Part shown: positions 20,799 through 57,289 of the stretch, in pieces
Position numbering within the stretch: the first letter of the stretch is position 1
How the letters are laid out: each line of letters begins with the position of its first letter
Virus record (IMG/VR): IMGVR_UViG_3300021962_000021
Location: 1 to 64,000 of that record
DNA length: 64,000 nt
Strand: one strand, 5' to 3'
Notes under the pieces: generated by a model
Database searches by the model: none
Told to the model about the DNA's origin: nothing
What the model saw: only the letters and a program-made list of their open reading frames with translations
Position numbers and translations under genes: made by a program

Positions 20799-20799
20799 T

Positions 20800-22538: not shown

Positions 22539-22541
22539 TTT

Positions 22542-23021: not shown

Positions 23022-23022
23022 A

Positions 23023-32711: not shown

Positions 32712-33585
32712 TATATTTGCACTTCCACAAGAATTGGAAGATTTGGCATTAACATTGGAAAGATTAAAAAGAAATTCGGCTTACATAGATAAATCCGTAG
32801 AATACAAAATAGATTTAACACTATCTTTATCGGATGAATTAACCGATTGGGAAAATTCTAAATTACCGAAAGAGTATTTTAGAGATAGAGCAACGGAATT
32901 GTGTGATAAGTATTTAGATTGGGGTGAATATGTATTGAGATTTGATAACAACTCAACAATATTAGGATGTGTTTCTCAAAGAAGAATGAGCTTGAAAAAC
33001 TATTCAGATGCCGATTTTTTTATTTGGTTAGATACGGATATTGTATTTAAAGATACTACATTATATTACATAACATCCGCATATCAAATGATAAAGAGTT
33101 CTGGAATGGATATGTTTATAGTGACTCCACAATTTGTAAAACAATGGGATAATACTTGGGACATAATTACTAATAAAAATTATTGGAATAAACCAATTAA
33201 TTATCATTTAGAATGCGACATATATCAAGAAGGATTACCACAATTAGAAGAAGTGGAAATCACACAAATAAATCAATTAAAATTTGCCGGTGGTTGGTTT
33301 ACATTAATATCAAAACCTTTATTGGATAGAATTGGTATACCCGAATCATTTGGACACTATGGATTGGAAGATACATTTGTTATGGCATGTGGTATGGTTA
33401 TGGCGCAAAACGGAGAAAATGTAGGTCAATTTGTAATGGAAAATTTAATTGTAGGTGAAAATCATAAGAACAGACCAAATCAATCTATAAAACAATATTT
33501 ATCATTAAGGGATAGAAAAGATGAGTTTAAAAAAATAGCTCATTCAAATTGGGAATCGGAAATTAATAAATTTATTCAAAAATGA
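32695..33585 (+). CDS. glycosyltransferase-like protein
   Basis: WLDTDI, GGWFTLI, YGLEDT. Confidence 0.55.
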   Translation: MKGIISIFALPQELEDLALTLERLKRNSAYIDKSVEYKIDLTLSLSDELTDWENSKLPKEYFRDRATELCDKYLDWGEYVLRFDNNSTILGCVSQRRMSLKNYSDADFFIWLDTDIVFKDTTLYYITSAYQMIKSSGMDMFIVTPQFVKQWDNTWDIITNKNYWNKPINYHLECDIYQEGLPQLEEVEITQINQLKFAGGWFTLISKPLLDRIGIPESFGHYGLEDTFVMACGMVMAQNGENVGQFVMENLIVGENHKNRPNQSIKQYLSLRDRKDEFKKIAHSNWESEINKFIQK

Positions 33586-34289
33586 CAATAGAACAATCAA
33601 AGGAAAAATTAAAAAAAAGTGGTTTTACTTATTTTAATTTAAAAGATTTTGATGAAAACGAATATCAGAAATTGGAAGTATTAAAATGTAATGATACTAC
33701 CAATTTTCAAAAACATATGACATCTTTTAGAGGTGATGCGTTATATAATTCAAAACCTGATGGTAAAAATTCAATTTGTGTAAATGATGATTTTACAACA
33801 TTTGAAAATGCAAATCTTAAAAAAAATGAAATAATAGTAAATAGTAAAAAGTTTGCACAATTATGGTTTTTTAGAGGATTGAGTAGAGTATTAGAAGATG
33901 CAAATCTTAAATATTCTTTAAACGAATATGATTCATTGGTAAAAAAGATAATTGATTTTTATTTTGATATGAATCCTATGCAAGAATATTCATCACCAAG
34001 TAGTATAACATATTATAATAATAATTGTTTGTTAGAAAATCATTCTGATGGAACGGGTACCGGTAGAATATGTGCATTACTTATTTATTTAAATGAAACA
34101 TATAGTGAAGAAGATGGTGGAATTTTAATATTAAACAATACGGATAAAGTGATTCCAACATTTGGAACCGTTGCTATTATTGATTTACAATCATTCGATA
34201 TACCACATATGGTTACGGAAGTAGTGGGTGGAATTGGTAGATATGCAATATTATCTTTTGTGAGAAAAAAAGAAGATGAGTTTAAATAA
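33582..34289 (+). CDS. 2OG-Fe(II) oxygenase
   Basis: HSD..RICALLIYLN..GGIL..PHMV..RYAI. Confidence 0.8.
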   Translation: MTIEQSKEKLKKSGFTYFNLKDFDENEYQKLEVLKCNDTTNFQKHMTSFRGDALYNSKPDGKNSICVNDDFTTFENANLKKNEIIVNSKKFAQLWFFRGLSRVLEDANLKYSLNEYDSLVKKIIDFYFDMNPMQEYSSPSSITYYNNNCLLENHSDGTGTGRICALLIYLNETYSEEDGGILILNNTDKVIPTFGTVAIIDLQSFDIPHMVTEVVGGIGRYAILSFVRKKEDEFK

Positions 34290-43615: not shown

Positions 43616-44620
43616 ATGATAAAGTTAAGAGACCTTTTAAAGGAAGAGGTTGTTGTAAAAAACAAAAAAACAGGTAATGTTTATGTGGTTAAGAATTTTG
43701 ACCCATCTAAACATGACAAACCTACTCCTGCCGAAGTTGATAAAGCCAAAGCAGCAAATGGTGGAAAACTTCCAAAAGGTGAACAACCATCTCAAAAACC
43801 TACCCCACAACAACCACAAGGGCAACCACAAAAAGGGCAAAAGGTAGCAGCATCGGATTTCAAAACAGCAGCTGAAAAACCTACGAATGGAAAAACCGAT
43901 ATTCCAATGTTAAAGGATTTAATGCCAAACGCAGACTTTAACAGAAAACCATTATCAGCCGTTGCACCTATTGAAAGACAACAAATTTCCACTATTATAG
44001 ATAAACTTGCCGATTTAGGTAAGCAAGCAAAAGAGAAAGGTGAAAAAGCACCTAACTTTAATTTGTGTCAAGTAACTGTTCCAGGTACTAACCTATATTG
44101 TGATGGAAACAAAGGAATTCCAAGAGAGGATATGCCACAATTCAAAGGAACACCTGAACCAGGATCACCTGCGGATAAACTACCAAAGGATGAAAATGGT
44201 GAAGCAGATACCGAAGAATTTTTTAAAGAAATGTTGAATAAACAAGGTATCAAAGTTTCAGAACCAGCAGCAGTTCCACCAGACCGTTTAAAAGCAACAC
44301 AAAGTGAGCTTGTCGGCGTTAAGGTAGCAGGAATGAGTAAAGTATTAGCAGACCCTAATCATCCTGCATATGAAAAAATTACAGCACCTATATATGTTTC
44401 CAATGATGGATATGTATTAGATGGTCACCACAGATGGGCGGCAGTTGTAGCACATAATGCAGCAAACCCAGATAATCAAATCCCAATGAATGTTAGAGTA
44501 ATTGATGAACCAATTGAACCATTGGTAAAACGCTCAAATGCATTCGCAGAAGCAATCGGTATTAGAGCTAAAAAAGCAGATACTGGAGCAGGTGGAGGAC
44601 CACAACCGATTACTAAATAG
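43616..44620 (+). CDS. ParB/Srx-like domain protein, probable virion-internal
   Basis: LKATQSEL, PIYVSNDGYVLDGHHRWAA; probable start MIKLRDLLKE at 43616. Confidence 0.7.
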   Translation: MIKLRDLLKEEVVVKNKKTGNVYVVKNFDPSKHDKPTPAEVDKAKAANGGKLPKGEQPSQKPTPQQPQGQPQKGQKVAASDFKTAAEKPTNGKTDIPMLKDLMPNADFNRKPLSAVAPIERQQISTIIDKLADLGKQAKEKGEKAPNFNLCQVTVPGTNLYCDGNKGIPREDMPQFKGTPEPGSPADKLPKDENGEADTEEFFKEMLNKQGIKVSEPAAVPPDRLKATQSELVGVKVAGMSKVLADPNHPAYEKITAPIYVSNDGYVLDGHHRWAAVVAHNAANPDNQIPMNVRVIDEPIEPLVKRSNAFAEAIGIRAKKADTGAGGGPQPITK

Positions 44621-44648
44621 TTTTATATTTATAAGAAACTATATAATC

Positions 44649-45482
44649 ATGCTACTTAAAAAAGGAGATAACAACGAGAACGTAAAATTAATGCAAGAGA
44701 AGTTAGGAATTTCTCCTGCAGTAACTAACTTTGGTCCAAAAACCGAAGCAGCAGTAAAAGAATTTCAAGCAAAGCACGGATTAACTGCCGATGGTATTGT
44801 TGGTGATAAAACGTGGGCGATGATTATGGGAGAGAATACTCCACCACCGCCACCACCTGCACCGATTGTACCTGTTGGTGGTTTGAAATTGGATGCATTA
44901 AAAGGACATGTTCCTGATGCAGTTATCCAAATGATTCCCGATACAGCGGCCAAATTCCAAATCAACACTCCATTAAGATTAGCACACTTCTTAGCACAAT
45001 GTGGACATGAAAGTGGTGGATTTAGAGTAACACAAGAGAATTTAAACTATTCAGCAAAAGGTTTGAATGGTATATTTAAGAAATATTTCCCAACTGAAGC
45101 TGCAGCAGCATCCTACGCTAGACAACCACAAAAGATTGCAAACAAAGTATATGCAAATCGTATGAGTAATGGTGATGAGGCTAGTGGGGATGGCTTTAAG
45201 TTTCGTGGTAGAGGATATATCCAATTAACAGGTAGAGCAAACTATACTGAATTTGGTAAAGCAATCGGAGAAGATATTGCAAATAACCCTGATATAGTTA
45301 GTGGAAAGCACGCATTATTATCGGCAGCATGGTTCTGGTCTAAAAATGGATTGAACAAAATGGCTGATGGTGGTGCAAGTGATGTAGTAGTAACATCTAT
45401 TACTAAGAGAGTAAATGGTGGAACTATTGGATTAGCAGACCGTATCAAACACTTTAAAGAATACTATCATTTATTAGCATAA
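44649..45482 (+). CDS. endolysin: peptidoglycan-binding domain plus GH19 domain
   Basis: FGPKTEAAVKEFQ..LTADGIVG; LAHFLAQCGHES, FRGRGYIQLTG, VNGGTIGL; probable start 44649. Confidence 0.92.
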   Translation: MLLKKGDNNENVKLMQEKLGISPAVTNFGPKTEAAVKEFQAKHGLTADGIVGDKTWAMIMGENTPPPPPPAPIVPVGGLKLDALKGHVPDAVIQMIPDTAAKFQINTPLRLAHFLAQCGHESGGFRVTQENLNYSAKGLNGIFKKYFPTEAAAASYARQPQKIANKVYANRMSNGDEASGDGFKFRGRGYIQLTGRANYTEFGKAIGEDIANNPDIVSGKHALLSAAWFWSKNGLNKMADGGASDVVVTSITKRVNGGTIGLADRIKHFKEYYHLLA

Positions 45483-45485
45483 AAG

Positions 45486-45511
45486 AAAGGGAGTTAAATA
45501 CTCCCTTTTTT
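45486..45511 (+). terminator. intrinsic terminator (possibly bidirectional)
   Basis: AAAGGGAGT / ACTCCCTTT stem plus T run. Confidence 0.85.
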
Positions 45512-45548: not shown

Positions 45549-45725
45549 ATGGAAAAATTTAAAATATTATTAAACATTTTATTAGTTACTTGTATTGTTG
45601 GATTGGCGATATCATATGTAACACAATTAATAAACTTACCATTTAAACTGAATTTTTTAGAAGCAGTTGGGGTTTATTGTTTGTGGACACCTATACACCA
45701 TACTTTTACTAGAAAAGAAAACTAA
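45549..45725 (+). CDS. small two-TM membrane protein
   Basis: 58 aa hand-read ORF MEKFKILLNILLVTCIVGLAIS...; promoter TTTG 45513, TATATTAG 45537. Confidence 0.55.
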   Translation: MEKFKILLNILLVTCIVGLAISYVTQLINLPFKLNFLEAVGVYCLWTPIHHTFTRKEN

Positions 45726-45780
45726 CTTTAATCATAGGTTTTGGTTATAATCTTATATTTATGTAAGAGAATAACCATTT

Positions 45781-46434
45781 ATGAGACAAAAAGTAACAGC
45801 ACTGGCATTAGGCCTTAAGGAAAGAGCTATATATTTTATACTAGCTCCATTTTTAGCATTCATTGGACTTGCGTTTTTATTCCAAGTCTTTTTTGTAATC
45901 CTTCAATTTAGTGGAAATGAAAATCTTGCAACAGATATTGCAAATGAAATTTCATGGAGAATTGATGGAACATTTAAAAATTCACCAGAAAACATTTGGT
46001 ATAACGCAGATGAACACATTTGGGTTGAAAGTGTAGAAAACAAAGTAAAGATTGGTAAATTGGCGGGAAACCGTAATTTGGAATTTGGTGTTAAGAATGT
46101 ATTAGAAGAATATTTACAGGATAAAAATTATAATTTATCTCCTGATGCTACGCAAAAACTTAAAGTAGAAATTGTATATTTAGATGTCTTAACTACAAAG
46201 ACAAACATTTCAGTATTTCATAAAGGGGAAGAAGAAGTTGTTATCAGAATGAAGGGTATCCTTTATAAAGATGGCAAAAAAGAAAAAGAGGTAATGGTTG
46301 AAGAATCATCATCAGAAATTTCCATGTCTACACTTATTGTTGACCAGGGTGGTAAATTCAATCAAACTTCGTTATCAAACGCACTTAAAAAAGCAGCAGA
46401 TAAACTAATAACAAAACTTTTTGAAAAAAAATAA
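45781..46434 (+). CDS. membrane-anchored envelope protein (CsgG/LptE-like alpha/beta fold candidate)
   Basis: N-terminal TM; C-terminal SNALKKAADKLI helix pattern like 54044. Confidence 0.45.
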   Translation: MRQKVTALALGLKERAIYFILAPFLAFIGLAFLFQVFFVILQFSGNENLATDIANEISWRIDGTFKNSPENIWYNADEHIWVESVENKVKIGKLAGNRNLEFGVKNVLEEYLQDKNYNLSPDATQKLKVEIVYLDVLTTKTNISVFHKGEEEVVIRMKGILYKDGKKEKEVMVEESSSEISMSTLIVDQGGKFNQTSLSNALKKAADKLITKLFEKK

Positions 46435-46435
46435 T

Positions 46436-48103
46436 ATGAAAAAATTATTAAGTATTTTAGGGGTATTATTGATGGTATCCCTTTCGTCTTTTGGACAAAT
46501 CATAGTTAATCAATCAATTTCTACTGGACCTTATAAAGTTGGTGATACCATCACAGTAACTTATAATGTAGATAAAGGAACAACTAAACCACGTTATTTT
46601 TGGTTGAGATATCAATATAATAATAAGGCGTTGACTTACCTTTCTACCACATTTTCACAAGGTAATCAATCTCAAACATATTATACAAGTTGGAATAACT
46701 ATAAGTTTACTGCAGCTGCAAACATATCAGATACTTCATTATATGCACAATATAGTGCAACTCCTTGGGGATATGCAGTAAATGCAGATTGGAATGTTGG
46801 CCAATTGGCAATTCAAAGAGCAGACCAAAGTGTGAATGGTGTAATAGCAACCCAAAAATATATTCTTAAAGACCAAAATGTTTATGAAAATTTTCACAAA
46901 TTAGATTTATCATACGCATTAGATAGTGCAACGGGTAATAACATTCCGTTTGTAAAAACAACATCTGGACCATTATCCATTACAGGGGTTACGGGTAATA
47001 CTTCTTTCTTTAAGGTGAGAGTTTTATTTCCAAATGGATATACAATTACAGACCACAATGTTCAATTAATGAGATTGAAAAATGATGGAACCGGTGATAT
47101 TGATTGGTCACAACAACCGATTGCACAAAGAGCATTGGATGCAAGTGGCGAAGCTCTATTCACTTCGGGTATTAAAGTTGGTGATTCGTTGGGTGTATTT
47201 GTATCACCCGCTTCACAAAAGACTTGGATGAATAATGTAATAACCGTATCGGATGCATATAAATCATTTTTGGGTGTTTCTCAAACTGATTTAAGTGGTG
47301 TTCCTACATTTTTCACTCGTCCAAATTTTGAAAAGAAAATAGGTAATATTACAAAAAATGATATGACATTTACCGAAGCAGATGCATACTATTCATTTGC
47401 ATATGTGATGGGGCAAGACGTATCGGCAAATGCATTTGTTCCAACATCAACAGCAACTTCGTGGAGATGGCATAGTGGTTTGTTAAACCAGAGTTGGTTA
47501 GATGGAACTTCTAAATATAGAGTATATGTAACACAACCTGCACAGACTGTAAATGCTGTATTTGCATGGGGTGGTGATTTAGATTGGTCACATTCATCTC
47601 ATCCTGATACGGTAGCAGCTAGAATAGCAAGTGGTATTTACACAAATGCAGCTAATCCTGGATCATCTGATGTTGCTACTATTAAAACTATGGCAATGAC
47701 TTCATATTCTACTAATGTTTATGAAAATAAAACAGCGGAGACTGCAAAATTATCTATCGTTTCTAAATTAGAGGGTGGTAAGGTTGTATTAACCGGTGCA
47801 TTGACAAAAGAAGGATTGGCGGGTTTACAGGTTGTAATGAATTATGATTCTACGAAATTAGAATTAGAAAATGTAATATTTGATGCGGGTTCAACAATTA
47901 CCAACTTCTCAACAAAAGAAAATGGTAGATTGACATTTGGTTCAATTGACCAATTAAAAACGGCTAGAATCAAAACGGGTATACCATATAAATTAGTATT
48001 TGCACCAAAGGGAGAATTAACAAATACGGCTGGTTTATTCTTCTTTGTATTGGCAGATGCAGTAGATGGTGCCGGTAAAAAAGTTGAATTAACCATAGAA
48101 TAA
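46436..48103 (+). CDS. exported cohesin/dockerin-like protein
   Basis: signal peptide SFG|Q; ITVSDAY/ADAY dockerin-like repeats; C-terminal GLQVVMNYDSTKLEL cohesin-like. Confidence 0.55.
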   Translation: MKKLLSILGVLLMVSLSSFGQIIVNQSISTGPYKVGDTITVTYNVDKGTTKPRYFWLRYQYNNKALTYLSTTFSQGNQSQTYYTSWNNYKFTAAANISDTSLYAQYSATPWGYAVNADWNVGQLAIQRADQSVNGVIATQKYILKDQNVYENFHKLDLSYALDSATGNNIPFVKTTSGPLSITGVTGNTSFFKVRVLFPNGYTITDHNVQLMRLKNDGTGDIDWSQQPIAQRALDASGEALFTSGIKVGDSLGVFVSPASQKTWMNNVITVSDAYKSFLGVSQTDLSGVPTFFTRPNFEKKIGNITKNDMTFTEADAYYSFAYVMGQDVSANAFVPTSTATSWRWHSGLLNQSWLDGTSKYRVYVTQPAQTVNAVFAWGGDLDWSHSSHPDTVAARIASGIYTNAANPGSSDVATIKTMAMTSYSTNVYENKTAETAKLSIVSKLEGGKVVLTGALTKEGLAGLQVVMNYDSTKLELENVIFDAGSTITNFSTKENGRLTFGSIDQLKTARIKTGIPYKLVFAPKGELTNTAGLFFFVLADAVDGAGKKVELTIE

Positions 48104-48104
48104 T

Positions 48105-50396
48105 ATGAAAAGATTATTAGTTACTTTATTACTTTTATTAACATCATTTTTAGGGTTCGGACAGAGTGTATCTGCTCCGGACTCTAAATCATTTTTACCA
48201 TCTACAGCAGGACAGGATGCTAGTGGATTTAGTTTGAGTGGTTTTAGTTCAACAGCAACCCTTTTAGCATCAATCAGTTTAGTAAACCCACCATCGGGTA
48301 CAACCTTTTATCTCAATACAACAGCAGGTTTAACCGCAGCAAGTGGATTCACTTTAGCAGGTAATAAGACTCGTTTAGTGGTAACGGGTACAATGGCTAA
48401 TATCAATACGGCATTAGCATCTCTTAAAGTAAATACTGGTTCGGTAAGAGGTAATGTTGCATTATCCGTAGCAGCAACTGTAAATCCAACCGGATACTAT
48501 TACAATGGTGTAAACGGACATTTTTATAGACCAATATCAACAACTGCAACTTATATAAATGCTAGAACATTAGCATCACAACAAACATTCAAAGGACAAC
48601 AAGGATATTTAGTAACAATAACTTCAGCCGATGAAGATGCTTTCATTTTTAATAATGTACCACAAGGTAATATTTGGTTTGCATTAACAGATGAAGTAAG
48701 TGAAGCAAGATGGACAATTGATGCGGGACCTGAAGCAGGAACTTTAATTAAAATCAATAATGGACAATTAAATGGAAACATACCAGGTCAATACAACAAC
48801 TGGGCACCCGGTGAACCAAACAATAGTGGTAATGAAGATTATGCAGTAACTAAATGGGGTGGTGGTTCTCAATGGAATGATTTACCAAACCATTTTTCAA
48901 ATCCTTATGTAATTGAATTTGGAACTTGGACTAACCCTGATAATGCAACATTTACAGAGTTTTACACCAATTCAGTAACACATACAAACGGAGAAGTTCT
49001 AACCGCAAGATTCAATATTGATTTTGGTAATAATGTAGATGAAACTAAATTTTCAGCAAAAGCAAACACTTTTGTAAATAATGTGTGGGGTGTAACAACA
49101 AACACATCGAGAGTATTAAGTGGGTTGGGTAAAGCAGATTTAACAAATGATTTAGATACGATAAAAGTAAATGGTAATGGTGTTAGAGCAACAACAACGG
49201 GAGGACAAGTAGAATGGTGTGTAGTATATGATTATGAACCATCAAATCAAAGATACCAAATTTTAATAGATAAAAGAGAATTTCCACAAGGCATTTCAGC
49301 AAGTGGTGTTACAACTTTACAATTATTTGATTTGTGGAATGGACCCGTGACGTATCAATGGGATGATGGAACATGGGCTGCTTATTGGATTTATACACCA
49401 ACAGAATTTAATTTTGCAGGTTCATCATTTACATCTAATATAAGACGAGCTGGATTTTTTTGGGGATTAAGTGCAGAATTTACATTTACGCCCATTCAAA
49501 TATACAAACAACATGGAGTAGATTTATCATACATCAACCAAACTGATTTAAATACTTTGTATAATAGTATTGTGACCGTATCAGATGTGTATTTAGCATT
49601 TAAGGAATTGGCTAATGGTGGGATATTTGGAAACGAAACAGGTAATGAATTTGGATATGGTATACAATTTATGAATGCTGATGTAGATGGTAATGGTGTA
49701 TTTAATGAAGCAGATACTTACAAATTATTACAACATTTAACAGGTATACAATCAATAAACGAATATCAAACATTAACATATTTGATGAAGTTATATGGTA
49801 AATCGGAATATGATGGGATTACAAAATCAAATTGGAATACACAATTTAACTCAACGAGGAGTTTATATCCATTCAGTTTAAATACCGGAACACTTAACAA
49901 CACATATAATGTTAGTGTAAGTTGGAAAGGTGATGTAAATCTTTCACATTCGGCAATACCTGTAGTTAATACCACACCTAATTCAATTACAGGTATGAGT
50001 ATTAGAACAATGAGTATTCCTACATCAAATCAAATAAACGCATCAATTATAACCGAAATGGTTGGTGATAGTGTTTATGCATATATCACAATAGACCCAT
50101 TACAACAAGAATTAGTAGGAACACAATTTCAAATAAATTACGATAATACTTTATTGAAATTTGGAAATGTATCCTATAAAACAAAAGGTTCACCAACTAA
50201 CTATGGAACCGATAAATCAACATATGTAAATTTGGGTTCTTTAATTACGGATGGTGGAACTTTGGATAATACTACGGAATATAAAGTATCATTCACAACA
50301 AAATCAAAATTGAATAATGTATTAGGATTAATTTCAATTGGATTTATGGATGCGGTAAATAAAGCAGGAACAACATTAAAAATTAGAATGCAATAA
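48105..50396 (+). CDS. exported C-type lectin / dockerin / cohesin-like protein
   Basis: signal GFG|Q; GHFY..GYLVTITS..NNWAPGEPNNSGNEDY..WNDL (C-type lectin, EPN motif); ADVDGNGVFNEADTY (dockerin/EF-hand); GTQFQINYDNTLL (cohesin-like). Confidence 0.72.
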   Translation: MKRLLVTLLLLLTSFLGFGQSVSAPDSKSFLPSTAGQDASGFSLSGFSSTATLLASISLVNPPSGTTFYLNTTAGLTAASGFTLAGNKTRLVVTGTMANINTALASLKVNTGSVRGNVALSVAATVNPTGYYYNGVNGHFYRPISTTATYINARTLASQQTFKGQQGYLVTITSADEDAFIFNNVPQGNIWFALTDEVSEARWTIDAGPEAGTLIKINNGQLNGNIPGQYNNWAPGEPNNSGNEDYAVTKWGGGSQWNDLPNHFSNPYVIEFGTWTNPDNATFTEFYTNSVTHTNGEVLTARFNIDFGNNVDETKFSAKANTFVNNVWGVTTNTSRVLSGLGKADLTNDLDTIKVNGNGVRATTTGGQVEWCVVYDYEPSNQRYQILIDKREFPQGISASGVTTLQLFDLWNGPVTYQWDDGTWAAYWIYTPTEFNFAGSSFTSNIRRAGFFWGLSAEFTFTPIQIYKQHGVDLSYINQTDLNTLYNSIVTVSDVYLAFKELANGGIFGNETGNEFGYGIQFMNADVDGNGVFNEADTYKLLQHLTGIQSINEYQTLTYLMKLYGKSEYDGITKSNWNTQFNSTRSLYPFSLNTGTLNNTYNVSVSWKGDVNLSHSAIPVVNTTPNSITGMSIRTMSIPTSNQINASIITEMVGDSVYAYITIDPLQQELVGTQFQINYDNTLLKFGNVSYKTKGSPTNYGTDKSTYVNLGSLITDGGTLDNTTEYKVSFTTKSKLNNVLGLISIGFMDAVNKAGTTLKIRMQ

Positions 50397-50740
50397 TGAA
50401 GAAGATATTATTTATATTATTTTTATCGTTGGTAGCTTGTAAAAAGGTAGAAGTTATACCACAACCAGAACCAACACCTATTGATATTTTTTCAGTAAAT
50501 GAAGTAACTCTTACAAACGGACAAGATTTTAATTTTACTTTAAAAAGTGGTGGAGTTCATATAATTACATTATTTGATTCAACCACCCAACAGGTTGTAA
50601 CTAAAGAAAAAATTAACGGAATTGTAGGTAATAACACAAAAAAAATATATACTAAATCATTATCACAAAAAAGTTTATATTTATACATAGTTAATGAGAA
50701 TAACCAAGAAATAGGCAGAACTTTAATTAAAATCCAGTAA
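50396..50740 (+). CDS. lipoprotein
   Basis: lipobox LVAC; small beta-rich domain. Confidence 0.7.
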   Translation: MKKILFILFLSLVACKKVEVIPQPEPTPIDIFSVNEVTLTNGQDFNFTLKSGGVHIITLFDSTTQQVVTKEKINGIVGNNTKKIYTKSLSQKSLYLYIVNENNQEIGRTLIKIQ

Positions 50741-50742
50741 CA

Positions 50743-51108
50743 ATGAAAAAACTTTTATTTGTATTATTTACAATTGTAATGGTTGGTTGTACAAAAACAC
50801 CAATAGCACCATTGCCACCACAAGTTGACAATTCTTTAAAAATTGAAAAAGTTGCAGGTATCAAATTGCAATCACCATTTGTGACTTCAGAAGTTGCAAT
50901 GAATGTGAAAGTAGAAACCTCACAAACTGTTACTGTAAAAATCATTGATATTGCAAACAGAGTAGTATCAAAAGAAGAAATGTATTTAAATTCCGGAGAT
51001 AACATCTTAAAAGTATATACCACCGCTTTACCAGCATCGGCATATAGAATAGGATTATATGATAAAAACGGAAATTTATTAGGAATCACAGATTTTAACA
51101 AACTATAA
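50743..51108 (+). CDS. lipoprotein with T9SS C-terminal-sorting-domain-like Ig fold
   Basis: lipobox MVGC; VKIIDIANRVV..GDN...TALPASAYRI resembles type A CTD. Confidence 0.55.
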   Translation: MKKLLFVLFTIVMVGCTKTPIAPLPPQVDNSLKIEKVAGIKLQSPFVTSEVAMNVKVETSQTVTVKIIDIANRVVSKEEMYLNSGDNILKVYTTALPASAYRIGLYDKNGNLLGITDFNKL

Positions 51109-51120
51109 AAACAAAAATTT

Positions 51121-51426
51121 ATGTCAGAAGAACAAAAAGAATCAGGTGGAACTTCATTGAAAAACATTATTTTGGGATTGGTATCGACTATAACTTTAGG
51201 TGTTGGTGGTTGGTTCACAACTAAATTAACAGGTGGAGATGAAAAAGAAGCAGCTCCAGTTCAACAAGCAGCTCCTGTAATTAACATCCAAAACACCAAT
51301 CAACAATCTCAAGCGGCAGGTGGTGGAAAAACTGTAATCGTTAAAGAAAAAACAGTAGAAAAACCGGCAGCTCCAGTTAAGAAGAAAGAAGGTGATGAGT
51401 TCAAAGAGAAACCGGCAGAATGGTAA
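51121..51426 (+). CDS. single-TM protein
   Basis: IILGLVSTITLGVGGWF TM then Q/K-rich tail. Confidence 0.65.
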   Translation: MSEEQKESGGTSLKNIILGLVSTITLGVGGWFTTKLTGGDEKEAAPVQQAAPVINIQNTNQQSQAAGGGKTVIVKEKTVEKPAAPVKKKEGDEFKEKPAEW

Positions 51427-51518
51427 TATGGTATCAAATAGGGACAGTTCTATTTTTTATAGTAGGACTTTCGTTATTAATTAATTGGTCATTTAAAATA
51501 AAGAAAAAAGATGAGTAA
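51420..51518 (+). CDS. 32 aa single-TM peptide
   Basis: hand-read MVIWYQIGTVLFFIVGLSLLINWSFKIKKKDE, overlapping both neighbours. Confidence 0.45.
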   Translation: MVIWYQIGTVLFFIVGLSLLINWSFKIKKKDE

Positions 51519-52176
51519 TCAACAACCGCCAAGCGGATTTAGGGATTTATTAAACGCAATGATGAAACGTAGATGGTATATTACTGCGTTGGTATTGGGT
51601 GGATTTATGTTTATAATGGCCGGAATGTTCGCCGCTATCGGTATAGGAACAAAAATGGCAGCAGAGTGGAAGGAACTTCTATTATTGTTATTAGGTGCGT
51701 TTATTGGTAGCTATGGTAAAATCATAGATTACTGGTTTAGTGATACCGATAAGGATAAGATGTTAGTTCAGAAAATGGATGAAGAAGATGGTGTTTCGAT
51801 GTCGCATACAAACGATATGAAAGAAACTAATAAACCAGTAACTCCAATCATTCCAGATGCATTTGTAGCAGGAGCAGCTGCAGCAAGAGAATTAGCAGTA
51901 GTAGAAAACAAACAAAATTTTGAATTGGCTAAAATCGAAGCAAGTCAACCAAAACCGGTAGAAACTCCAAAATCACAACCAAGAACAGGTGTTGAAGTTG
52001 ATGAAGATGGTGATGGTGTAATGGATGGTATTGATTTTGATGGTGATGGTAAGATTGATATGTATTTCGCACATAGACAATGTGAACACATTTGGGGTGA
52101 TACTGACCATAATGGTGAAGAAGAATGTCAGAAATGTGGAAAGATAAAAGATGAAGATGCTGAAATGGCAGGATAA
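51511..52176 (+). CDS. two-TM protein with acidic EF-hand-like loops
   Basis: two TMs, DYWFS, DEDGDGVMDGIDFDGDG, C-terminal C..CG. Confidence 0.65.
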   Translation: MSNQQPPSGFRDLLNAMMKRRWYITALVLGGFMFIMAGMFAAIGIGTKMAAEWKELLLLLLGAFIGSYGKIIDYWFSDTDKDKMLVQKMDEEDGVSMSHTNDMKETNKPVTPIIPDAFVAGAAAARELAVVENKQNFELAKIEASQPKPVETPKSQPRTGVEVDEDGDGVMDGIDFDGDGKIDMYFAHRQCEHIWGDTDHNGEEECQKCGKIKDEDAEMAG

Positions 52177-52215: not shown

Positions 52216-52488
52216 ATGGGATTTTGGAAAGAATTATTTAAAGACAACAATGATATCAACGAAAAATCAGTAGTTGGTTTCTTATCATTCGCATGTATGG
52301 TAATTGCATTATTCGTAGACTTGGTAACAGGTTGGATGGGTAAAGAATTATTAATTAACGAATATATTTTTAACGGATTTTTAGTAATCACATTGGGTGC
52401 ATTTGGTATCGCATCGGTTGATAAATACATCAACAGAAAAGCGGAGCATGATAAAAACAAACTGGACGCCGGTGTAGAAGAAGGATAA
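52216..52488 (+). CDS. two-TM membrane protein (holin-like candidate)
   Basis: INEKSVVGF, two hydrophobic helices, charged tail. Confidence 0.6.
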   Translation: MGFWKELFKDNNDINEKSVVGFLSFACMVIALFVDLVTGWMGKELLINEYIFNGFLVITLGAFGIASVDKYINRKAEHDKNKLDAGVEEG

Positions 52489-52504
52489 TAATTTGGTAAT
52501 ATTG

Positions 52505-52533
52505 AAAACCCTCACTTTTAGTGGGGGTTTTTT
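52505..52533 (+). terminator. intrinsic terminator
   Basis: AAAACCCTCACT / AGTGGGGGTTTT stem plus T run; resembles the 40791 terminator. Confidence 0.8.
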
Positions 52534-54043: not shown

Positions 54044-54763
54044 ATGAAAAAATTATTCGTATTATTCGTTGGCTTTTTGTTAAGCAATGTTGTAGTTGCC
54101 CAAACTGTGGGAAGCACAAAAACTGAACAATATAAAGCATCATTTGAAACCGCAATTGATATTTCTAACTTTTTAGATTATGATGGACCACAAATTCCAA
54201 TCCAAATCTTAAAGTGTGGTATTTCCGATGAGATGTATGAAATGTATCCTGAACTAAAAGAGAAAAGAGTAGGATTGGGTGTAGCAAATATTTCAATGGA
54301 ATATTTGGAAAACCTTAATCGTTTCAAATTTACCGAAGATAAAACTGAAATTAAAAACAGAATGGTGCAACAATTCAAAGCATCAAACGCTGGTATTTCT
54401 GAAAACAAAATTGAAGGTAGAGGTAAAATCAATTTAGCAAAATACTTCGTAACAATCGAATGTTATGATTATTCGGTATCAGAAGATGAGACAGTGAATT
54501 TAAAAGATGGTGTTAAAAACCTAATGGTGACTCGTATCGGTTTACAGGTTAGATTTACCGATGCAGAAACAGGTGTAGTATTCGGAGCAAGTGGTTTGGG
54601 TGAGGCCAAAACTACAAGAGAATTAACTTTATTATCAGATGCAACCATTGATCCTGTTAAGTTTAACCAATCTACTATTTCTATCGCAACAAAGAAAGCA
54701 TTGGATATTGCTTGTGCTAGAATTTTAGATAGAATGATTAAAAAACAAATCTTTACTAAATAA
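54044..54763 (+). CDS. CsgG-like exported protein
   Basis: signal VVA|Q; LENLNRFKFTE, IGLQVRFTDAETG, ATKKALDIA pattern. Confidence 0.6.
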   Translation: MKKLFVLFVGFLLSNVVVAQTVGSTKTEQYKASFETAIDISNFLDYDGPQIPIQILKCGISDEMYEMYPELKEKRVGLGVANISMEYLENLNRFKFTEDKTEIKNRMVQQFKASNAGISENKIEGRGKINLAKYFVTIECYDYSVSEDETVNLKDGVKNLMVTRIGLQVRFTDAETGVVFGASGLGEAKTTRELTLLSDATIDPVKFNQSTISIATKKALDIACARILDRMIKKQIFTK

Positions 54764-54966: not shown

Positions 54967-55247
54967 AAAACTTACTATTAGCAGCAATATTGTTATTAGG
55001 AATAGCAAGTTGCACTCCGGTTAAATATGTAATGATTGACCCTAAAGATTCTACAAAATTGGTAGAGGTTAGAAAGAGAATTGTATATGATGATTATTAT
55101 ATGCAATCTCCATTGTTTTATAATTATTGGATAACACCACATTATAGAACACCTATTATTATACAACAACCAATTAGAGTTCCTCAACCACCGGTTAGAT
55201 ATAAACAATCAGCACCTATAAGAAAATTTGAACCACGTAAAAGATAA
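54963..55247 (+). CDS. lipoprotein
   Basis: lipobox IASC. Confidence 0.65.
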   Translation: MKNLLLAAILLLGIASCTPVKYVMIDPKDSTKLVEVRKRIVYDDYYMQSPLFYNYWITPHYRTPIIIQQPIRVPQPPVRYKQSAPIRKFEPRKR

Positions 55248-56662
55248 TGAAAAAGTGGTTAATAGGTCTTATTGTTGTTTTATTATTTGCTTTAAAAGCC
55301 AATGGACAAACCTATACCCAAACTTATGTTGATAAGTGTACCGGAGAAATTAAGATAGTTACAACATCCTATGTAAATGGTAATGCAATAGTTTCTTTTT
55401 ATAATCAAGTAAAGATATTCACACCATCGGAAGTTGCAACCGGTGTAGTTCAGGGGTGGTTAAACTCAGTTTATGCACAATATAATTCGATGGCATGCCC
55501 AACGAATCAGGTAGTAACACAGACTGTTCAAAATACAGTTACACAAGCTGCTTCACAAGCCGCATCTTCTGCAGCAAGTGCAGCTGCAAGTTCAGCGGCA
55601 TCTTCATCGGCAAGTTCGGCAGCAAGTAGTTCAGCATCATCTGCGGCATCATCATCTGCAAGTTCGGCAGGTAGTTCTGCAGCAAGTAGTGGGGCATCGG
55701 CTTCTTCATCAACACCGCCGGCAAGTAGTAGTTCATCTAGTAGCTCATCTTCATCTAGCTCAAGCAGTTCATCTTCTTCATCATCTTCGGAAAGTAAAAC
55801 TGAAACAAAGAGTGAGGGTAGTTCTTCATCATCCGAGTCAAAGAGTGAGAGTAAATCGGAAAGCAAATCGGAAGAATCAAAATCCGAAAGTAAGAGTGAA
55901 GAAAAGAAAGAAGAATCTAAATCCGAATCCAAAGAAGAAAAGAAAGAGGAAAAAAAGGAAGAGAAGAAAGAATCCAAAAAAGAAGAAAAGAAAAAATCAG
56001 GTGGATTAAACCCAATGATATTGGCATCAGATTTAACAGCGGCACAAAATCCTGATAAAAAAATGAATGCAATTTTGGGATTGGGTTGGAGTAGAGCAAG
56101 TATGGCCGGTGATGAATCATTCTCTGCAAATGCAATGATATGGAGTAATTTAAAACAATTTGCATTAGGTGGTGGTTATACTAAAATGGAATTTGATGAA
56201 GGACAATTAAAAGCAATCCATTCATATGGAACTACTGTCGCATATTTGGATGGTAACTATATGAATTTAATGAGTTACACTTATATTAAACCACATCCAA
56301 AACACGGAACATATGGTTATAATTTGGGTGTTGTGAATTTATTTATTAAAAATCCAGAAAAAGATAGATGGGAATATAATATGATTTCATCGGGTGTAGC
56401 ATTTTGGACTAAACCATACGCATATAGTAAAAAATTGACAATATCACCACAAACATTTATTTTACTATCACCAATTAGTTATAATTCTACAACAGGAAAC
56501 ACATTGGTAAATAGACATATGGGATTTTTAGTAGGAAGTTCATTTGACTATAAAATCAGTAAAAGATTTGGATTCAGCATAAACTATAAGATAGCAGGAA
56601 ACACTATGCCTGGATCTCCTATATTACATAATGTATTAATTGGAAGCAGATTAATATTATAA
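55247..56662 (+). CDS. exported protein with Ser/Ala and Glu/Lys low-complexity linker and C-terminal beta-barrel-like domain
   Basis: signal ANG|Q; alternating hydrophobic strands in the last ~220 aa. Confidence 0.65.
   Translation: MKKWLIGLIVVLLFALKANGQTYTQTYVDKCTGEIKIVTTSYVNGNAIVSFYNQVKIFTPSEVATGVVQGWLNSVYAQYNSMACPTNQVVTQTVQNTVTQAASQAASSAASAAASSAASSSASSAASSSASSAASSSASSAGSSAASSGASASSSTPPASSSSSSSSSSSSSSSSSSSSSSESKTETKSEGSSSSSESKSESKSESKSEESKSESKSEEKKEESKSESKEEKKEEKKEEKKESKKEEKKKSGGLNPMILASDLTAAQNPDKKMNAILGLGWSRASMAGDESFSANAMIWSNLKQFALGGGYTKMEFDEGQLKAIHSYGTTVAYLDGNYMNLMSYTYIKPHPKHGTYGYNLGVVNLFIKNPEKDRWEYNMISSGVAFWTKPYAYSKKLTISPQTFILLSPISYNSTTGNTLVNRHMGFLVGSSFDYKISKRFGFSINYKIAGNTMPGSPILHNVLIGSRLIL
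55546..55997 (+). repeat. low-complexity coding repeat (SSAA / poly-Ser / SESK / EEKK)
   Basis: visible in translation, synonymous codons varied. Confidence 0.9.
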
Positions 56663-56686: not shown

Positions 56687-57289
56687 ATGAAAAAATTATT
56701 TACGTTATTTACACTTTTAGTTATTGGTGTTATAACATTCGCACAAGATACCGTTAGAGTTAAAAACAATGTATTCGAAGTTCTTTATTCACAATCATTG
56801 GAACAACCATTGATGATTAAATATCATTCAACAAATAGACCTACAAAGGTTAATAGAGGTGCTATGGATTTTTACAAAGAACCAAATATCAAAACATCCG
56901 ATGCTGATGATTACAAAGCAAACATATATGATAAAGGACATGGTGCACCCGCTGCAACATTCTCTGATAATATCGAAAATCTTAAACAAACATTTTCGTA
57001 TTTGAATTGTATTCTACAAGACCAATATCTTAATAGAGGTGAGTGGAGATTGTTAGAGGAACAAGAAAGAAAGTGGGATGATACTGAAAATTTAACAGTA
57101 GTAATTAAAGTTTTATTTGATAAGCCTGTTAAAAGAATACCAACAAATGCTGCAATACCAATTGTTTTACAAAAGCATATTTATTTTGAAAACCAAAAGA
57201 AATGGAAGTGTTATGTATTTTTAAATGAAAGACCTAAATATAAGTGGGAAGAATTAGAAATGATTTGCCCACCATCTGACCATAAATAA
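56687..57289 (+). CDS. exported DNA/RNA non-specific endonuclease (NucA family)
   Basis: signal TFA|Q; YDKGHGAPAA, LNRGEW..LE. Confidence 0.88.
   Translation: MKKLFTLFTLLVIGVITFAQDTVRVKNNVFEVLYSQSLEQPLMIKYHSTNRPTKVNRGAMDFYKEPNIKTSDADDYKANIYDKGHGAPAATFSDNIENLKQTFSYLNCILQDQYLNRGEWRLLEEQERKWDDTENLTVVIKVLFDKPVKRIPTNAAIPIVLQKHIYFENQKKWKCYVFLNERPKYKWEELEMICPPSDHK

Follow-up and report, generated by a model that had tools for sequence, protein, structure and literature searches.

Surface proteins of Bacteroidota normally carry the T9SS C-terminal sorting domain (CTD) in cis, which raises the question of why a virus encodes two large cohesin proteins without such a tail, followed immediately by small lipoproteins that resemble the missing domain. 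We addressed this question in virus record IMGVR_UViG_3300021962_000021 (238,219 bp), of which the first 64,000 nucleotides, here called the window, were analyzed. The host is most likely a freshwater member of the Flavobacteriales. Our data indicate an operon of exported proteins, at least one with a lectin domain, each ending in a cohesin domain and paired with a tiny CTD-shaped lipoprotein. The phage may thereby plant its own lectins on the host envelope or interfere with the host secretion machine.

Results

The initial annotation described two proteins with shared segments and a C-terminal cohesin-like domain, then two small lipoproteins, the second resembling a type-A T9SS sorting domain. 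Each of these features was found at positions 46436 to 51108, and the observation is confirmed, although the dockerin it named is only partly borne out. The annotation missed that P2 is a lectin, that the four genes are the core of a larger envelope operon, and that the gene order is two nested pairs. The features of the region, all on the plus strand, are as follows.

45483..45511 (+), intrinsic-terminator-like hairpin (12-bp stem followed by a T run) just after the endolysin gene (PG_binding_1 + GH19, ending at 45482); proposed upstream border of the operon
45549..45725 (+), tm58, a 58-aa membrane protein with a hydrophobic N-terminal segment, conserved in 9 related loci
45781..46434 (+), tm217, an N-terminally anchored or signal-bearing envelope protein always directly upstream of P1; present in 76 of 79 related loci and in distant lineages, where it has a cleavable signal peptide; its stop is 2 nt before the P1 start
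46436..48103 (+), P1 (P0001, 555 aa), with a signal peptide (aa 1-20, cleavage before Gln21) and an unassigned beta-rich N-terminal region
47219..47425 (+), P1 degenerate dockerin-like module (aa ~262-330), homologous to the P2 module but without Ca ligands; family HMM hit at aa 262-399
47564..47596 (+), P1 invariant W-x-G-D-x-D/N-x-S-H-S motif (aa 377-387)
47729..48100 (+), P1 C-terminal cohesin domain (aa ~432-555)
48105..50396 (+), P2 (P0002, 763 aa), with a signal peptide (aa 1-19, cleavage before Gln20), an N-terminal beta domain (aa 20-135) and a beta-sandwich (aa 285-476); AlphaFold2 model, mean pLDDT 80
48510..48929 (+), P2 C-type lectin domain (aa ~136-275) with EPN (237-239) and WND (257-259)
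49533..49739 (+), P2 dockerin-like F-hand module (aa 477-545) with one canonical Ca loop, DVDGNGVFNEAD
49920..49952 (+), P2 invariant W-x-G-D-V-N-x-S-H-S motif (aa 606-616), followed by a disordered linker (aa 622-641)
50031..50393 (+), P2 C-terminal cohesin domain (aa 643-763)
50396..50740 (+), P3 (P0003, 114 aa), a lipoprotein (Cys15) made of a Pro-rich tether and a CTD-like beta-sandwich; proposed partner of P2
50743..51108 (+), P4 (P0004, 121 aa), a lipoprotein (Cys16) with a ~21-aa tether and a CTD-like seven-strand sandwich (aa 38-121; model pLDDT 85); proposed partner of P1
51121..51426 (+), tm101, a single-pass membrane protein with a Lys/Pro/Glu-rich tail, conserved after the lipoprotein genes in distant lineages too
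51511..52176 (+), tm221, a membrane protein with Asp-rich Ca-loop-like repeats and a Cys knuckle near its C-terminus
52216..52488 (+), p90, a small membrane protein and the last gene before the terminator
52504..52532 (+), intrinsic-terminator-like hairpin (13-bp stem followed by a T run); proposed downstream border of the operon
54044..54763 (+), sp239, a signal-peptide protein that co-occurs with the cassette and averages 84% identity among relatives
55247..56662 (+), sp471, with a signal peptide, N-terminal domain, Ser/Lys/Glu low-complexity spacer and C-terminal outer-membrane beta-barrel (TM 0.6-0.84 to autotransporter, Omp85 and DUF481 barrels); co-occurs with the cassette

P1 and P2 are Sec-exported proteins with a conserved tail comprised of a dockerin-like F-hand module, an invariant WxGDxxxSHS motif, a flexible linker and a C-terminal cohesin. 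Shared segments are ITVSDAYKSF (aa 269-278) and AWGGDLDWSHS (aa 377-387) in P1, and VTVSDVYLAF (aa 490-499) and SWKGDVNLSHS (aa 606-616) in P2. The D, F, W-x-G-D and S-H-S positions are invariant in an alignment of 60 family members. The P1 W-x-G-D motif is also invariant in a set of 53 sequences and at least 90% conserved in 63 distant relatives. The C-terminal ~190 aa of the two proteins align at 26% identity (E 3e-12), a similarity well beyond chance. Pfam Cohesin scored 27.7 bits for P1 (cut-off 24.1) and 18.5 bits for P2, and 33 of the 63 distant relatives hit Cohesin (best E 3e-10). The P2 model shows a nine-strand domain that matches type-I and non-cellulosomal cohesins, with a Foldseek E of 1e-6 to Clostridium perfringens cohesins 2jh2, 2vo8 and 2w1n, and Z 13.4, rmsd 2.1 and 121 aligned residues to type-I cohesins.

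The dockerin-like module is less secure. P2 scored 13.4-16.8 bits against Dockerin_1, below the 22.9 cut-off, and 27 of 60 scanned module sequences gave hits that were likewise below the cut-off (best E 6e-5). The P2 model shows the helix pattern of the module, but the homologous P1 module has lost the Ca ligands, and a profile of the module found no dockerin in the PDB. No T9SS tail was detected on P1 or P2, and the cohesin domain itself is not a CTD (hhalign 0.2%). P2 also contains a C-type lectin domain, supported by Pfam Lectin_C (23.7 bits; cut-off 22.6), PDB sequence hits to aggrecan and MBP CTLDs, and Z scores of 12-12.9 to CTLDs. EPN, E244 and WND are invariant in 52 orthologues. P2 orthologues swap this head, carrying either a C-type lectin or PA14/GLEYA on a constant tail.

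P3 and P4 are paralogous lipoproteins (25% identity, E 1e-8) with lipoboxes LVAC and MVGC, respectively, and the Cys is invariant in 92 relatives. Each is only a short tether of ~20 residues plus a seven-strand sandwich. The best PDB match of P4 is the T9SS type-A CTD of mirolase (Z 11.0, rmsd 1.8 A), every non-viral ESM-Atlas neighbour carries Por_Secre_tail, and hhalign gave 88% against real CTDs. The CTD resemblance of P4 is real at fold and profile level. Nonetheless, no curated CTD model reaches its cut-off with P3 or P4, the PNP motif and conserved glycines are replaced, and MG and FN3 domains and DUF3244 proteins score only about 1 Z unit lower than the best CTD match. All 43 P4 orthologues end in ..NK(L/I/V/Q), and a near-invariant Lys lies near the C-terminus of CTDs, which T9SS binds by fold in a plastic pocket (PMC10994853). 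The lipoprotein export signal C-x-K-(D/E)2, as defined in PMC5080379, is present in 20 of 43 P4 orthologues, and acidic residues also follow the Cys in the distant lineages. The window's own P4 (C-T-K-T-P) and most P3 proteins lack a full signal, so surface exposure is not uniform across the family.

The four genes lie in a ~7-kb operon (about 45.5-52.5 kb) made only of envelope proteins and conserved in more than 120 large-phage contigs. From tm217 to tm101, start and stop codons overlap or lie within 12 nt; no RNA data were listed. In eight divergent lineages every cohesin gene is directly followed by its own CTD-like lipoprotein gene. This arrangement was seen in the lineages labelled L104, L108, L109, L187, L189 and L191, and twice and separately on the single contig of L192 (P1-type then P4-type; P2-type then P3-type). 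P4-type genes follow P1-type genes in L104, L108, L109, L187, L189 and L192, whereas a P3-type gene directly follows the P2-type gene in L192. The window's order is therefore two nested pairs, P1-[P2-P3]-P4. Of complete cassettes, 123 have 2+2 copies and one has 1+1. Distance-matrix correlations were 0.63 for P2-P3 and 0.56 for P1-P4, against 0.36 for the adjacent P1-P2.

Interpretation

The absence of predicted cohesin, dockerin or CTD folds had been named in advance as grounds for discarding the initial annotation. All three folds are predicted, the cohesin and the CTD-like fold firmly and the dockerin only as a sub-threshold, degenerate module. The annotation proposed that the pair polymerises through cohesin-dockerin contacts and is anchored or exported in trans, or that the CTD mimic jams host T9SS, which powers gliding and could be a phage receptor. 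This interpretation is partly supported: the idea of action in trans gains real comparative support from gene pairing in every divergent lineage examined, while polymerisation, export through T9SS and jamming of T9SS were not assayed. The single complex prediction, of the kind the annotation had proposed as a test, returned no answer.

The best explanation, held tentatively, is that P1 with P4 and P2 with P3 are two modules, each consisting of a Sec-exported modular glycan-binding protein with a variable head (a C-type lectin in this P2; PA14/GLEYA or CBMs in relatives) and a lipoprotein that would serve as its cognate membrane anchor or address, supplied in trans. In this view, the conserved tail, most likely the cohesin, binds the lipoprotein, and the lipid holds the complex at the outer membrane. 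The CTD-shaped domain, or in many orthologues a K-(D/E)2 export signal, would give access to the cell surface, possibly through the SprA/PorV pocket, which recognises CTDs by shape. The infected cell would thereby be coated with phage lectins that bind host-type glycans, most likely to mask receptors (exclusion of other phages, protection of progeny from debris) or to stick cells together. The targeting signals, predicted folds, paralogy, operon borders proposed at the two hairpins, strict gene pairing, head swapping and intact sugar-binding motifs come directly from the analysis, whereas physical binding, route and final topology, the glycan bound and the biological purpose are inferred. Gene adjacency shows coupling, not contact, and there is no evidence of binding between any of these proteins. 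A CTD supplied in trans has no precedent, and a lipid anchor might hinder passage through the translocon. The host, and hence its T9SS, is inferred from signal-peptide style (cleavage before Gln) and from a mis-binned contig, a 3.4-kb relative in a Schleiferiaceae MAG that has 18 Por_Secre_tail proteins. Phage proteins annotated with a CTD in cis do exist in BFVD.

Two alternatives are doubtful to a similar degree. P3 and P4 might be T9SS decoys, lipid-tethered CTD mimics without a passenger that occupy the SprA/PorV substrate pocket or the PorU/PorV attachment complex and cannot be released. Secretion of gliding adhesins and other surface proteins that serve as phage receptors would thereby be shut down (superinfection exclusion), with a separate role for the lectins. 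The closeness of fold and profile to type-A CTDs, the position of the domain at the very C-terminus and its conserved Lys near the end are consistent with this view, and resistance to Flavobacterium phages reportedly maps to gliding and T9SS genes (PMC8315173, cited in PMC11611037). Decoys do not, however, explain why each lipoprotein gene is strictly paired with a cohesin-lectin gene in all lineages, the CTD motifs are degraded, half of the P4 orthologues carry a surface-export signal, and functional data do not exist. Alternatively, the sandwich may be just a small Ig-like, DUF3244-type module in an envelope complex unrelated to T9SS, acting in lysis, in envelope remodelling or in holding peptidoglycan or periplasmic glycans, with the lectins retained in the periplasm. 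DUF3244 is hit by 43 of 92 family members, as many as hit Por_Secre_tail, and DUF3244 structures score Z 8.3-9.4. The endolysin is adjacent here and in 14 relatives, the operon encodes four membrane proteins, a beta-barrel protein co-occurs with it, P1 and P2 have no known signal for crossing the outer membrane, and P4 has a weak Rz-like spanin hit (E 0.015). Conversely, the endolysin is not adjacent in most relatives and is separated from the operon here by the terminator-like hairpin, head swapping points to a variable, strain-specific glycan target rather than peptidoglycan, the non-viral Atlas neighbours are all CTD-bearing proteins, and spanin features (a short unstructured lipoprotein plus a coiled-coil partner) are absent.

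Less likely is the main idea of the initial annotation, a self-assembling polymer in which the dockerin-like module binds, in a Ca-dependent way, the cohesin of the other protein or of its own kind to build chains or a lattice of lectins. Both module types reside in one polypeptide separated by a flexible linker, P2 retains a canonical Ca loop, and such a contact would be compatible with the best explanation. Against it weigh the failure of Dockerin_1 ever to reach its cut-off, the lost Ca ligands of P1 and the lack of a PDB dockerin match. Moreover, lineages with a single cohesin protein keep the module, so a P1-P2 heteropolymer cannot be its general role. Very unlikely is decoration of released virions by lectins that fold in the periplasm and act as accessory adhesins. 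A variable glycan-binding head on a constant tail resembles receptor-binding proteins, and a 101-aa ORF among the head genes has one dockerin/EF-hand-like loop. However, signal peptides and paired lipoproteins are not features of tailed-phage virion proteins, no other protein in the 238-kb genome carries the family's modules, and the operon lies among early and host-interaction genes, far from the structural genes near 190 kb.

Comparison with known systems

The cohesins most resemble non-cellulosomal modules such as those of C. perfringens GH84C and GH33 and type-I cellulosomal cohesins, sharing a nine-strand jelly-roll at the end of a secreted multi-domain carbohydrate-active or carbohydrate-binding protein. 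They differ in being encoded by a phage of a Gram-negative Bacteroidota-type host, in the sub-threshold dockerin-like module that partly or wholly lacks Ca ligands, and in a conserved gene partner that is a lipoprotein rather than a dockerin-bearing enzyme. P3 and P4 resemble type-A CTDs (PF18962 / TIGR04183), such as the mirolase CTD (8qb1) and the NucA and FspA CTDs bound in SprA-PorV (8glk, 8glj), in the size of the seven-strand sandwich, its extreme C-terminal position, the Lys near the end and in-register profile similarity. They lack a passenger, and the domain is preceded by a lipoprotein signal peptide and short tether. DUF3244 (PF11589) lipoprotein-like proteins of Bacteroides (4g5a, 3d33, 3sd2) are also small stand-alone Ig-like sandwiches of Bacteroidota, but scores fall below the cut-off (21.3 against 25) and below the best CTD match. 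Their function is itself unknown, and no pairing with cohesin proteins is known to us.

Among the best viral structural matches to P4 are proteins of uncultured Caudovirales phages (BFVD A0A6J5M064, A0A6J5L910 and A0A6J5M2J1) that carry the host's T9SS tag fused to a passenger of 240-636 aa. Here, tag-like domain and passenger-like lectin are separate genes, and the tag-like protein is lipidated. Receptor-masking phage lipoproteins such as T5 Llp or the Cor proteins are likewise small outer-membrane lipoproteins thought to protect the infected cell and progeny phage. Sequence or fold relation to these was not examined; they act alone on a TonB-dependent receptor, whereas P3 and P4 are paired with lectins and look like secretion tags. 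Finally, the P2 lectin domain shares its fold and its EPN plus WND sugar/Ca site with animal-type Ca-dependent C-type lectins (CEL-I, mannose-binding protein, langerin), yet it is phage-encoded, is swapped for PA14/GLEYA in orthologues and contains no cysteine at all, so the hallmark disulfides are missing.

Genome context and likely host

The virus record, of which the window is the first 64 kb, comprises 238,219 bp and is rated complete by CheckV. All long ORFs of the window lie on the plus strand and G+C content is about 31%. Genes upstream of the P1 to P4 locus encode a DnaB helicase, a ribonucleotide reductase, a family-B-type DNA polymerase and several glycosyltransferases, and the genome is therefore that of a large tailed phage. 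Searches of the INPHARED phage collection by blastn and tblastn found no match, and PHROGs has no family for P1 or P2 and only marginal hits for P3 and P4. A polysaccharide-type gene cluster at 19419-34289 contains several family-1 and family-2 glycosyltransferases, an NAD-dependent epimerase/dehydratase (23023), a sugar C-methyltransferase (29233) and a HAD hydrolase fusion (26715). The phage may thus build or alter a surface glycan, which could be the ligand of its own lectins.

Three lines of evidence point to a host among the Bacteroidota. Signal peptides of the exported proteins end just before a Gln that is at least 90% conserved in distant relatives, which is the "Q-rule" of Bacteroidota. 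Many of the lipoproteins carry the Bacteroidota lipoprotein export signal (PMC5080379). Lastly, the only hit in 185,579 species genomes is a 3.4-kb contig binned into a Schleiferiaceae (Flavobacteriales) MAG from a lake. This is a weak hint, because the contig is probably phage DNA that was binned with the MAG. The MAG itself has 18 proteins with a T9SS sorting domain above the Pfam cut-off. It also has an open frame of only 114 aa (L086; G001:C115:8599-8799, minus strand) carrying a Por_Secre_tail above the cut-off, suggesting that short CTD-only products may also exist in cells, although it could equally be a gene fragment.

Modular architecture of P1 and P2

The initial annotation described two large proteins that share two sequence segments and end in a cohesin-like domain, followed by two small lipoproteins, one of which resembles a type A T9SS sorting domain. 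Inspection of the reading frames, alignments and predicted structures showed that these features are present. Proteins P1 to P4 are P0001 to P0004 of the window, and the features of the two large proteins are as follows.

46436-48103, plus strand: P1, 555 aa
46535-46711, plus strand: N-terminal region of P1 (aa ~34-92) with a second, weak Cohesin hit
47564-47596, plus strand: W-x-G-D-x-N/D-x-S-H-S motif of P1
48105-50396, plus strand: P2, 763 aa
49920-49952, plus strand: W-x-G-D-x-N/D-x-S-H-S motif of P2

The tails of P1 and P2 align at 26% identity (E 3e-12). In an alignment of 60 sequences from both families, the D and F of the TVSD.Y..F segment and the W-x-G-D ... S-H-S motif are invariant. 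The latter is the most conserved element of the whole family, being invariant in the clade and at least 90% conserved in relatives at 20-30% identity. It sits just before the flexible linker to the cohesin, and whether it is a metal site or a processing site is unexplained.

Absence of predicted cohesin, dockerin or CTD folds had been named in advance as the observation that would overturn the initial reading, and we examined each by profile comparison, and the cohesin and CTD-like folds also by structure comparison. The Pfam Cohesin model (PF00963) scores 27.7 bits in P1, above its cut-off of 24.1, but only 18.5 bits in P2. The AlphaFold2 model of P2, built from a 52-sequence alignment (mean pLDDT 80), has a nine-strand C-terminal domain (aa 643-763) whose best matches are the non-cellulosomal cohesins of Clostridium perfringens and type-I cohesins (Foldseek E 1e-6; Z 13.4, rmsd 2.1, 121 of 144 residues aligned to type-I cohesins). 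The N-terminal region of P1 gives its additional Cohesin hit at 14.9 bits, and P1, which was not folded, may begin with another cohesin-like sandwich. Sequence and profile searches of the PDB with P1, the P1 family, the dockerin-like module and the lipoprotein family gave only noise.

A C-type lectin domain (PF00059) at residues ~136-275 of P2 had not been recognized initially. It scores 23.7 bits against a cut-off of 22.6, has PDB sequence hits to the aggrecan and mannose-binding-protein domains, and aligns to C-type lectin domains with Z 12-12.9. Residues of the Ca/sugar site (E237-P238-N239, E244 and W257-N258-D259) are invariant in 52 orthologues. The conserved intradomain disulfides are absent, as the single Cys of P2, at position 372, lies outside the domain. 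The remainder of the model consists of an N-terminal beta domain, a well-modelled beta-sandwich (aa 285-476), a helical module (aa 479-545), a mixed region that ends in the invariant motif, and a disordered linker (aa 622-641) preceding the cohesin.

The helical module of P2 hits Pfam Dockerin_1 (PF00404) over nearly the whole profile, but at 13.4-16.8 bits it falls below the cut-off of 22.9, and P1 gives no hit. When 60 module sequences were scanned individually, 27 hit Dockerin_1, all below the cut-off (best E 6.1e-5), and no other family came close. The two tandem F-hand Ca loops expected of a type I dockerin are not both present. In P2 the second loop is canonical (DVDGNGVFNEAD) while the first is degenerate and modelled as a helix, and in P1 both are degenerate. 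A joint sequence profile of the module found no dockerin in the PDB; the module was not submitted alone to structure search, and cohesin and lectin matches fill the hit lists for the whole P2 model. Docking, also proposed beforehand, was attempted as one complex comprising the P1 cohesin, the P2 cohesin and Ca, with the P2 dockerin-like module as the scored partner. The median score was 0.47, as against 0.67 in the control where the P1 cohesin was replaced, an outcome that is evidence neither for nor against binding of a dockerin partner; single pairs and lectin-lipoprotein pairs were not modelled. The only other dockerin-like signal in the genome is a 101-aa ORF among the head-morphogenesis genes, outside the window (G000:C1:193541-193846 of the phage genome), with one dockerin/EF-hand-like loop (DVDKDGEIEGSD; Dockerin_1 17 bits, below the cut-off). 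We therefore refer to a dockerin-like F-hand module, recognizable in P2 and decayed in P1, that is not a proven dockerin.

We also considered whether the cohesin domain is a disguised T9SS tag. This was rejected because hhalign against real CTDs gives 0.2%, an HMM of host CTDs finds nothing in the 273 proteins scanned, and no Por_Secre_tail hit appears at E<=0.01 among 63 representatives of the family. ESM Atlas rows that suggested Por_Secre_tail in similar viral clusters scored below 0.9 and were not reproduced.

CTD-like lipoproteins P3 and P4

P3 and P4 are paralogues with canonical lipoboxes and an invariant Cys. A minus-strand ORF overlapping P4 (50727-51218) was dismissed, since all genes of the region are on the plus strand and it is the plus-strand frame that is conserved as a lipoprotein family. 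The P4 model (92-sequence alignment, pLDDT 85) is a seven-strand sandwich spanning aa 38-121, where pLDDT exceeds 90, at the extreme C-terminus. Foldseek against the PDB gave only generic Ig-like hits. However, an exhaustive alignment to 48,161 chains ranked the T9SS CTD of mirolase first (Z 11.0, rmsd 1.8, 77 of 88 residues) and the NucA CTD bound in the translocon third (Z 9.9), with the PorU, FspA and PorZ CTDs and three DUF3244 proteins within the next 40. MG and FN3 domains score Z 9-10. In the ESM Atlas, four viral clusters of the same family are followed by six rows (rows 5-10), all Bacteroidota proteins in which 88-100% of members carry Por_Secre_tail (rmsd 1.2-1.7 over 82-86 residues). 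Three of the best hits in the viral structure library are phage proteins annotated with a sorting domain.

Sequence evidence for a type A CTD (PF18962 / TIGR04183) is weaker. P0003 and P0004 give no hit to the curated models at E<=1 in Pfam or NCBIfam, nor does a scan of the genome. Of 92 family members, 40 hit Por_Secre_tail (best E 3.4e-4), 43 hit DUF3244 (PF11589) and 23 hit FlgD_ig, all below the cut-offs; P0004 itself scores 21.3 bits for DUF3244 against a cut-off of 25. A profile-profile comparison with 18 genuine CTDs from the Schleiferiaceae MAG gave 88% probability (E 2.8e-6) over 64 columns in register, whereas the cohesin alignment, used as a control, gave the 0.2% cited earlier. 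The defining motifs (PNP near the start, D-x-x-G-x-V and L-x-x-G-x-Y) are in register but replaced, reading QSPF, D-I-A-N-R-V and L-P-A-S-A-Y in P0004, while P-N-P, G, G and Y are invariant in the 18 real CTDs. By contrast, a Lys near the C-terminus, the one near-invariant feature noted in translocon-bound CTDs (PMC10994853), is conserved, lying in the last 4 residues of 43 of 43 P4 orthologues and in the last 8 residues of 48 of 49 P3 orthologues. In place of a passenger with a type-I signal peptide, P3 and P4 have a type-II signal and only a ~16-21-aa tether before the domain. T9SS-dependent export and PorU cleavage were not assayed here. Collectively, these data indicate that P3 and P4 are remote, passenger-less, lipid-tethered relatives or mimics of type-A CTDs.

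The minimal export signal of Flavobacteriia surface lipoproteins is K-(D/E)2 at positions +3 to +5 (PMC5080379). Exactly C-x-K-(D/E)-(D/E) occurs in 20 of 43 P4 orthologues but in only 3 of 49 P3 orthologues, and distant lineages also have acidic residues after the Cys. The P0004 and P0003 proteins lack the signal, reading C-T-K-T-P and C-K-K-V-E, respectively. Surface exposure is therefore likely for many family members but not certain for the P4 of this window. A two-component spanin of the Rz/Rz1 type was also considered. P3 and P4 carry a folded 85-aa sandwich rather than being short unstructured Pro-rich lipoproteins, and the membrane protein tm101 has a low-complexity tail rather than periplasmic coiled coils, leaving a PHROG Rz-like hit at E 0.015 as the only support.

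Gene neighborhood

From tm217 to tm101 (45781 to 51426) the genes overlap or are at most 12 nt apart. The unit tm58-tm217-P1-P2-P3-P4-tm101-tm221-p90 encodes only membrane, exported or lipidated proteins and is flanked by long-stem terminator-like hairpins. Expression was not examined, no RNA run being listed for 45700-51500. Neighboring features are as follows, all genes being on the plus strand.

44538-45482: endolysin with PG_binding_1 and a GH19 chitinase-like domain
45483-45511: terminator-like hairpin immediately after the endolysin gene
51511-52176: tm221, a membrane protein
52504-52532: terminator-like hairpin after p90
54044-54763: sp239, an exported protein with no family assignment
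55247-56662: sp471, with a C-terminal outer-membrane beta-barrel
56687-57289: DNA/RNA non-specific endonuclease (Endonuclease_NS, E 1e-19)

The order tm217-P1-P2-P3-P4-tm101-tm221-(p90)-sp239-sp471 is kept in about 70 of 79 IMG/VR loci, many from contigs of 100-330 kb, whereas the endolysin is adjacent in only 14 of the 79. Protein tm221 has two adjacent Asp-rich Ca-loop-like repeats (DEDGDGVMDG, DFDGDGKID) and a C-x-x-C ... C-x-x-C knuckle near its C-terminus; its topology and role are unknown. Further signal-peptide genes follow the unit, encoding sp239, a 94-aa lipoprotein, sp471 and the endonuclease. The most conserved member of the neighborhood is sp239 (54-97%, mean 84% identity), which stays with the cassette in distant lineages. 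The endonuclease has a signal peptide that cleaves before Gln and would be a periplasmic or secreted phage nuclease, possibly acting against incoming DNA or extracellular DNA.

The layout of sp471 resembles that of an autotransporter, with a signal peptide, a ~90-aa N-terminal domain, about 150 residues of Ser-, Lys- and Glu-rich low complexity, and the C-terminal barrel (TM 0.6-0.84 to autotransporter, Omp85 and DUF481 barrels). An extra 297-aa gene between P2 and P3, absent from the window, occurs at L008:9227-10117, L006:9497-10399 and about 30 other related loci. Its product has a signal peptide, ends in ..GTNFQF (an aromatic outer-membrane beta-signal), is 80-93% conserved and is distantly related to the sp471 barrel. 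Neither sp471 nor the 297-aa barrel could be assigned as a PorP/SprF homologue, as both lack a Pfam hit and show only a generic outer-membrane beta-barrel similarity.

Family range and pairing of cohesin and lipoprotein genes

A word search found more than 3,000 close relatives of P1, none with a functional name. An exhaustive profile search of 1.84 billion representatives found only 191 at E<=1e-3, with the cohesin at the C-terminus in essentially all full-length ones. Among 63 of these, Pfam finds Cohesin in 33 (best E 3.3e-10), PA14 in 9, GLEYA in 7, Lectin_C in 2, CBM56, CBM49 and LCCL in one each, and Por_Secre_tail in none. The PA14-type proteins are P2 orthologues in the same phage clade and share everything from about residue 290 onwards. 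The family is therefore a constant tail carrying exchangeable sugar-binding heads.

In more distant lineages, with P1-type proteins at 24-31% identity, one cohesin gene is directly followed by one CTD-like lipoprotein gene. This holds for the loci L104, L108, L109, L187, L189 and L191. In a further locus, L192, two cohesin genes lie 4.5 kb apart and each has its own lipoprotein gene behind it, the P1-type gene being followed by a P4-type gene and the PA14/GLEYA P2-type gene by a P3-type gene. The window's order P1-P2-P3-P4 is thus two nested pairs. Of 125 complete cassettes, which overlap in part and are not 125 independent genomes, 123 have two of each gene, one has one of each, and one appears to have a broken P2. 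Distance-matrix correlations across 40 non-redundant loci fit the pairing (P2-P3 0.63 and P1-P4 0.56, against 0.36 for the adjacent P1-P2 and 0.35 for P2-P4), although P1-P3 is 0.55 and physical linkage confounds the measure. In several distant members the lipoproteins hit the HMM of host CTDs directly (E 4e-7 to 3e-5).

Discussion

Phages of Bacteroidota are poorly understood, as is the way they deal with the T9SS-dependent surface on which they adsorb. The best-supported statement is structural and comparative: a conserved phage operon sends modular lectins and CTD-shaped lipoproteins, in cognate pairs, to the host envelope. Beyond this we rely on inference. The pairing is best explained if the lipoprotein is the partner of the lectin's constant tail and holds it at the outer membrane, a reading we regard as tentative. 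The CTD shape, together with the shape-based recognition of CTDs by SprA/PorV (PMC10994853), makes use or abuse of the T9SS plausible. Head swapping argues for a variable, host-specific glycan target, as expected for receptor masking or cell-to-cell adhesion. The initial annotation had proposed that the large proteins polymerize through cohesin-dockerin contacts and are anchored or exported in trans, or that the CTD mimic jams the host T9SS, an interpretation that our data support only in part.

Alternatives to the anchor model are a pure T9SS decoy, a T9SS-independent envelope or lysis complex, a cohesin-dockerin polymer, and post-lysis decoration of virions, none of which is excluded. A more far-reaching possibility, which we consider unlikely, is a split T9SS substrate made by a virus. 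In this view, the secretion tag (CTD-like domain) and the cargo (lectin) are separate polypeptides that meet through the cohesin tail. The host's type-IX translocon, which moves folded proteins and recognizes the tag by shape, would then export the lectin piggy-back and leave it held on the surface by the tag's own lipid. This would be the first trans-acting CTD, and a phage-built surface-display system independent of the host sortase PorU and of A-LPS.

A strictly conserved pairing of an exported, head-swapping lectin with a lipidated look-alike of the secretion tag, found in more than a hundred large freshwater phage genomes, points to an undescribed way of rewiring the host surface, be it display of viral lectins, masking of receptors or blockade of secretion. 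If the tag works in trans, it would change the rule that T9SS cargo carries its CTD in cis and would give a simple two-part tool for surface display in Flavobacteria. If it works as a decoy, it would be the first natural protein inhibitor of T9SS.

Literature searches on phage cohesins and dockerins, on jumbo phages and T9SS, and on DUF3244 found nothing on this system. Its components each have precedents, as non-cellulosomal cohesins, C-type lectin domains in bacteria, T9SS CTDs and phage proteins with a CTD in cis are all known. A secretion tag acting in trans would be new in kind, although we think this improbable. What differs here from the known systems is the combination: an exported phage lectin with a cohesin tail, strictly paired with a lipidated, passenger-less CTD look-alike inside an all-envelope operon.
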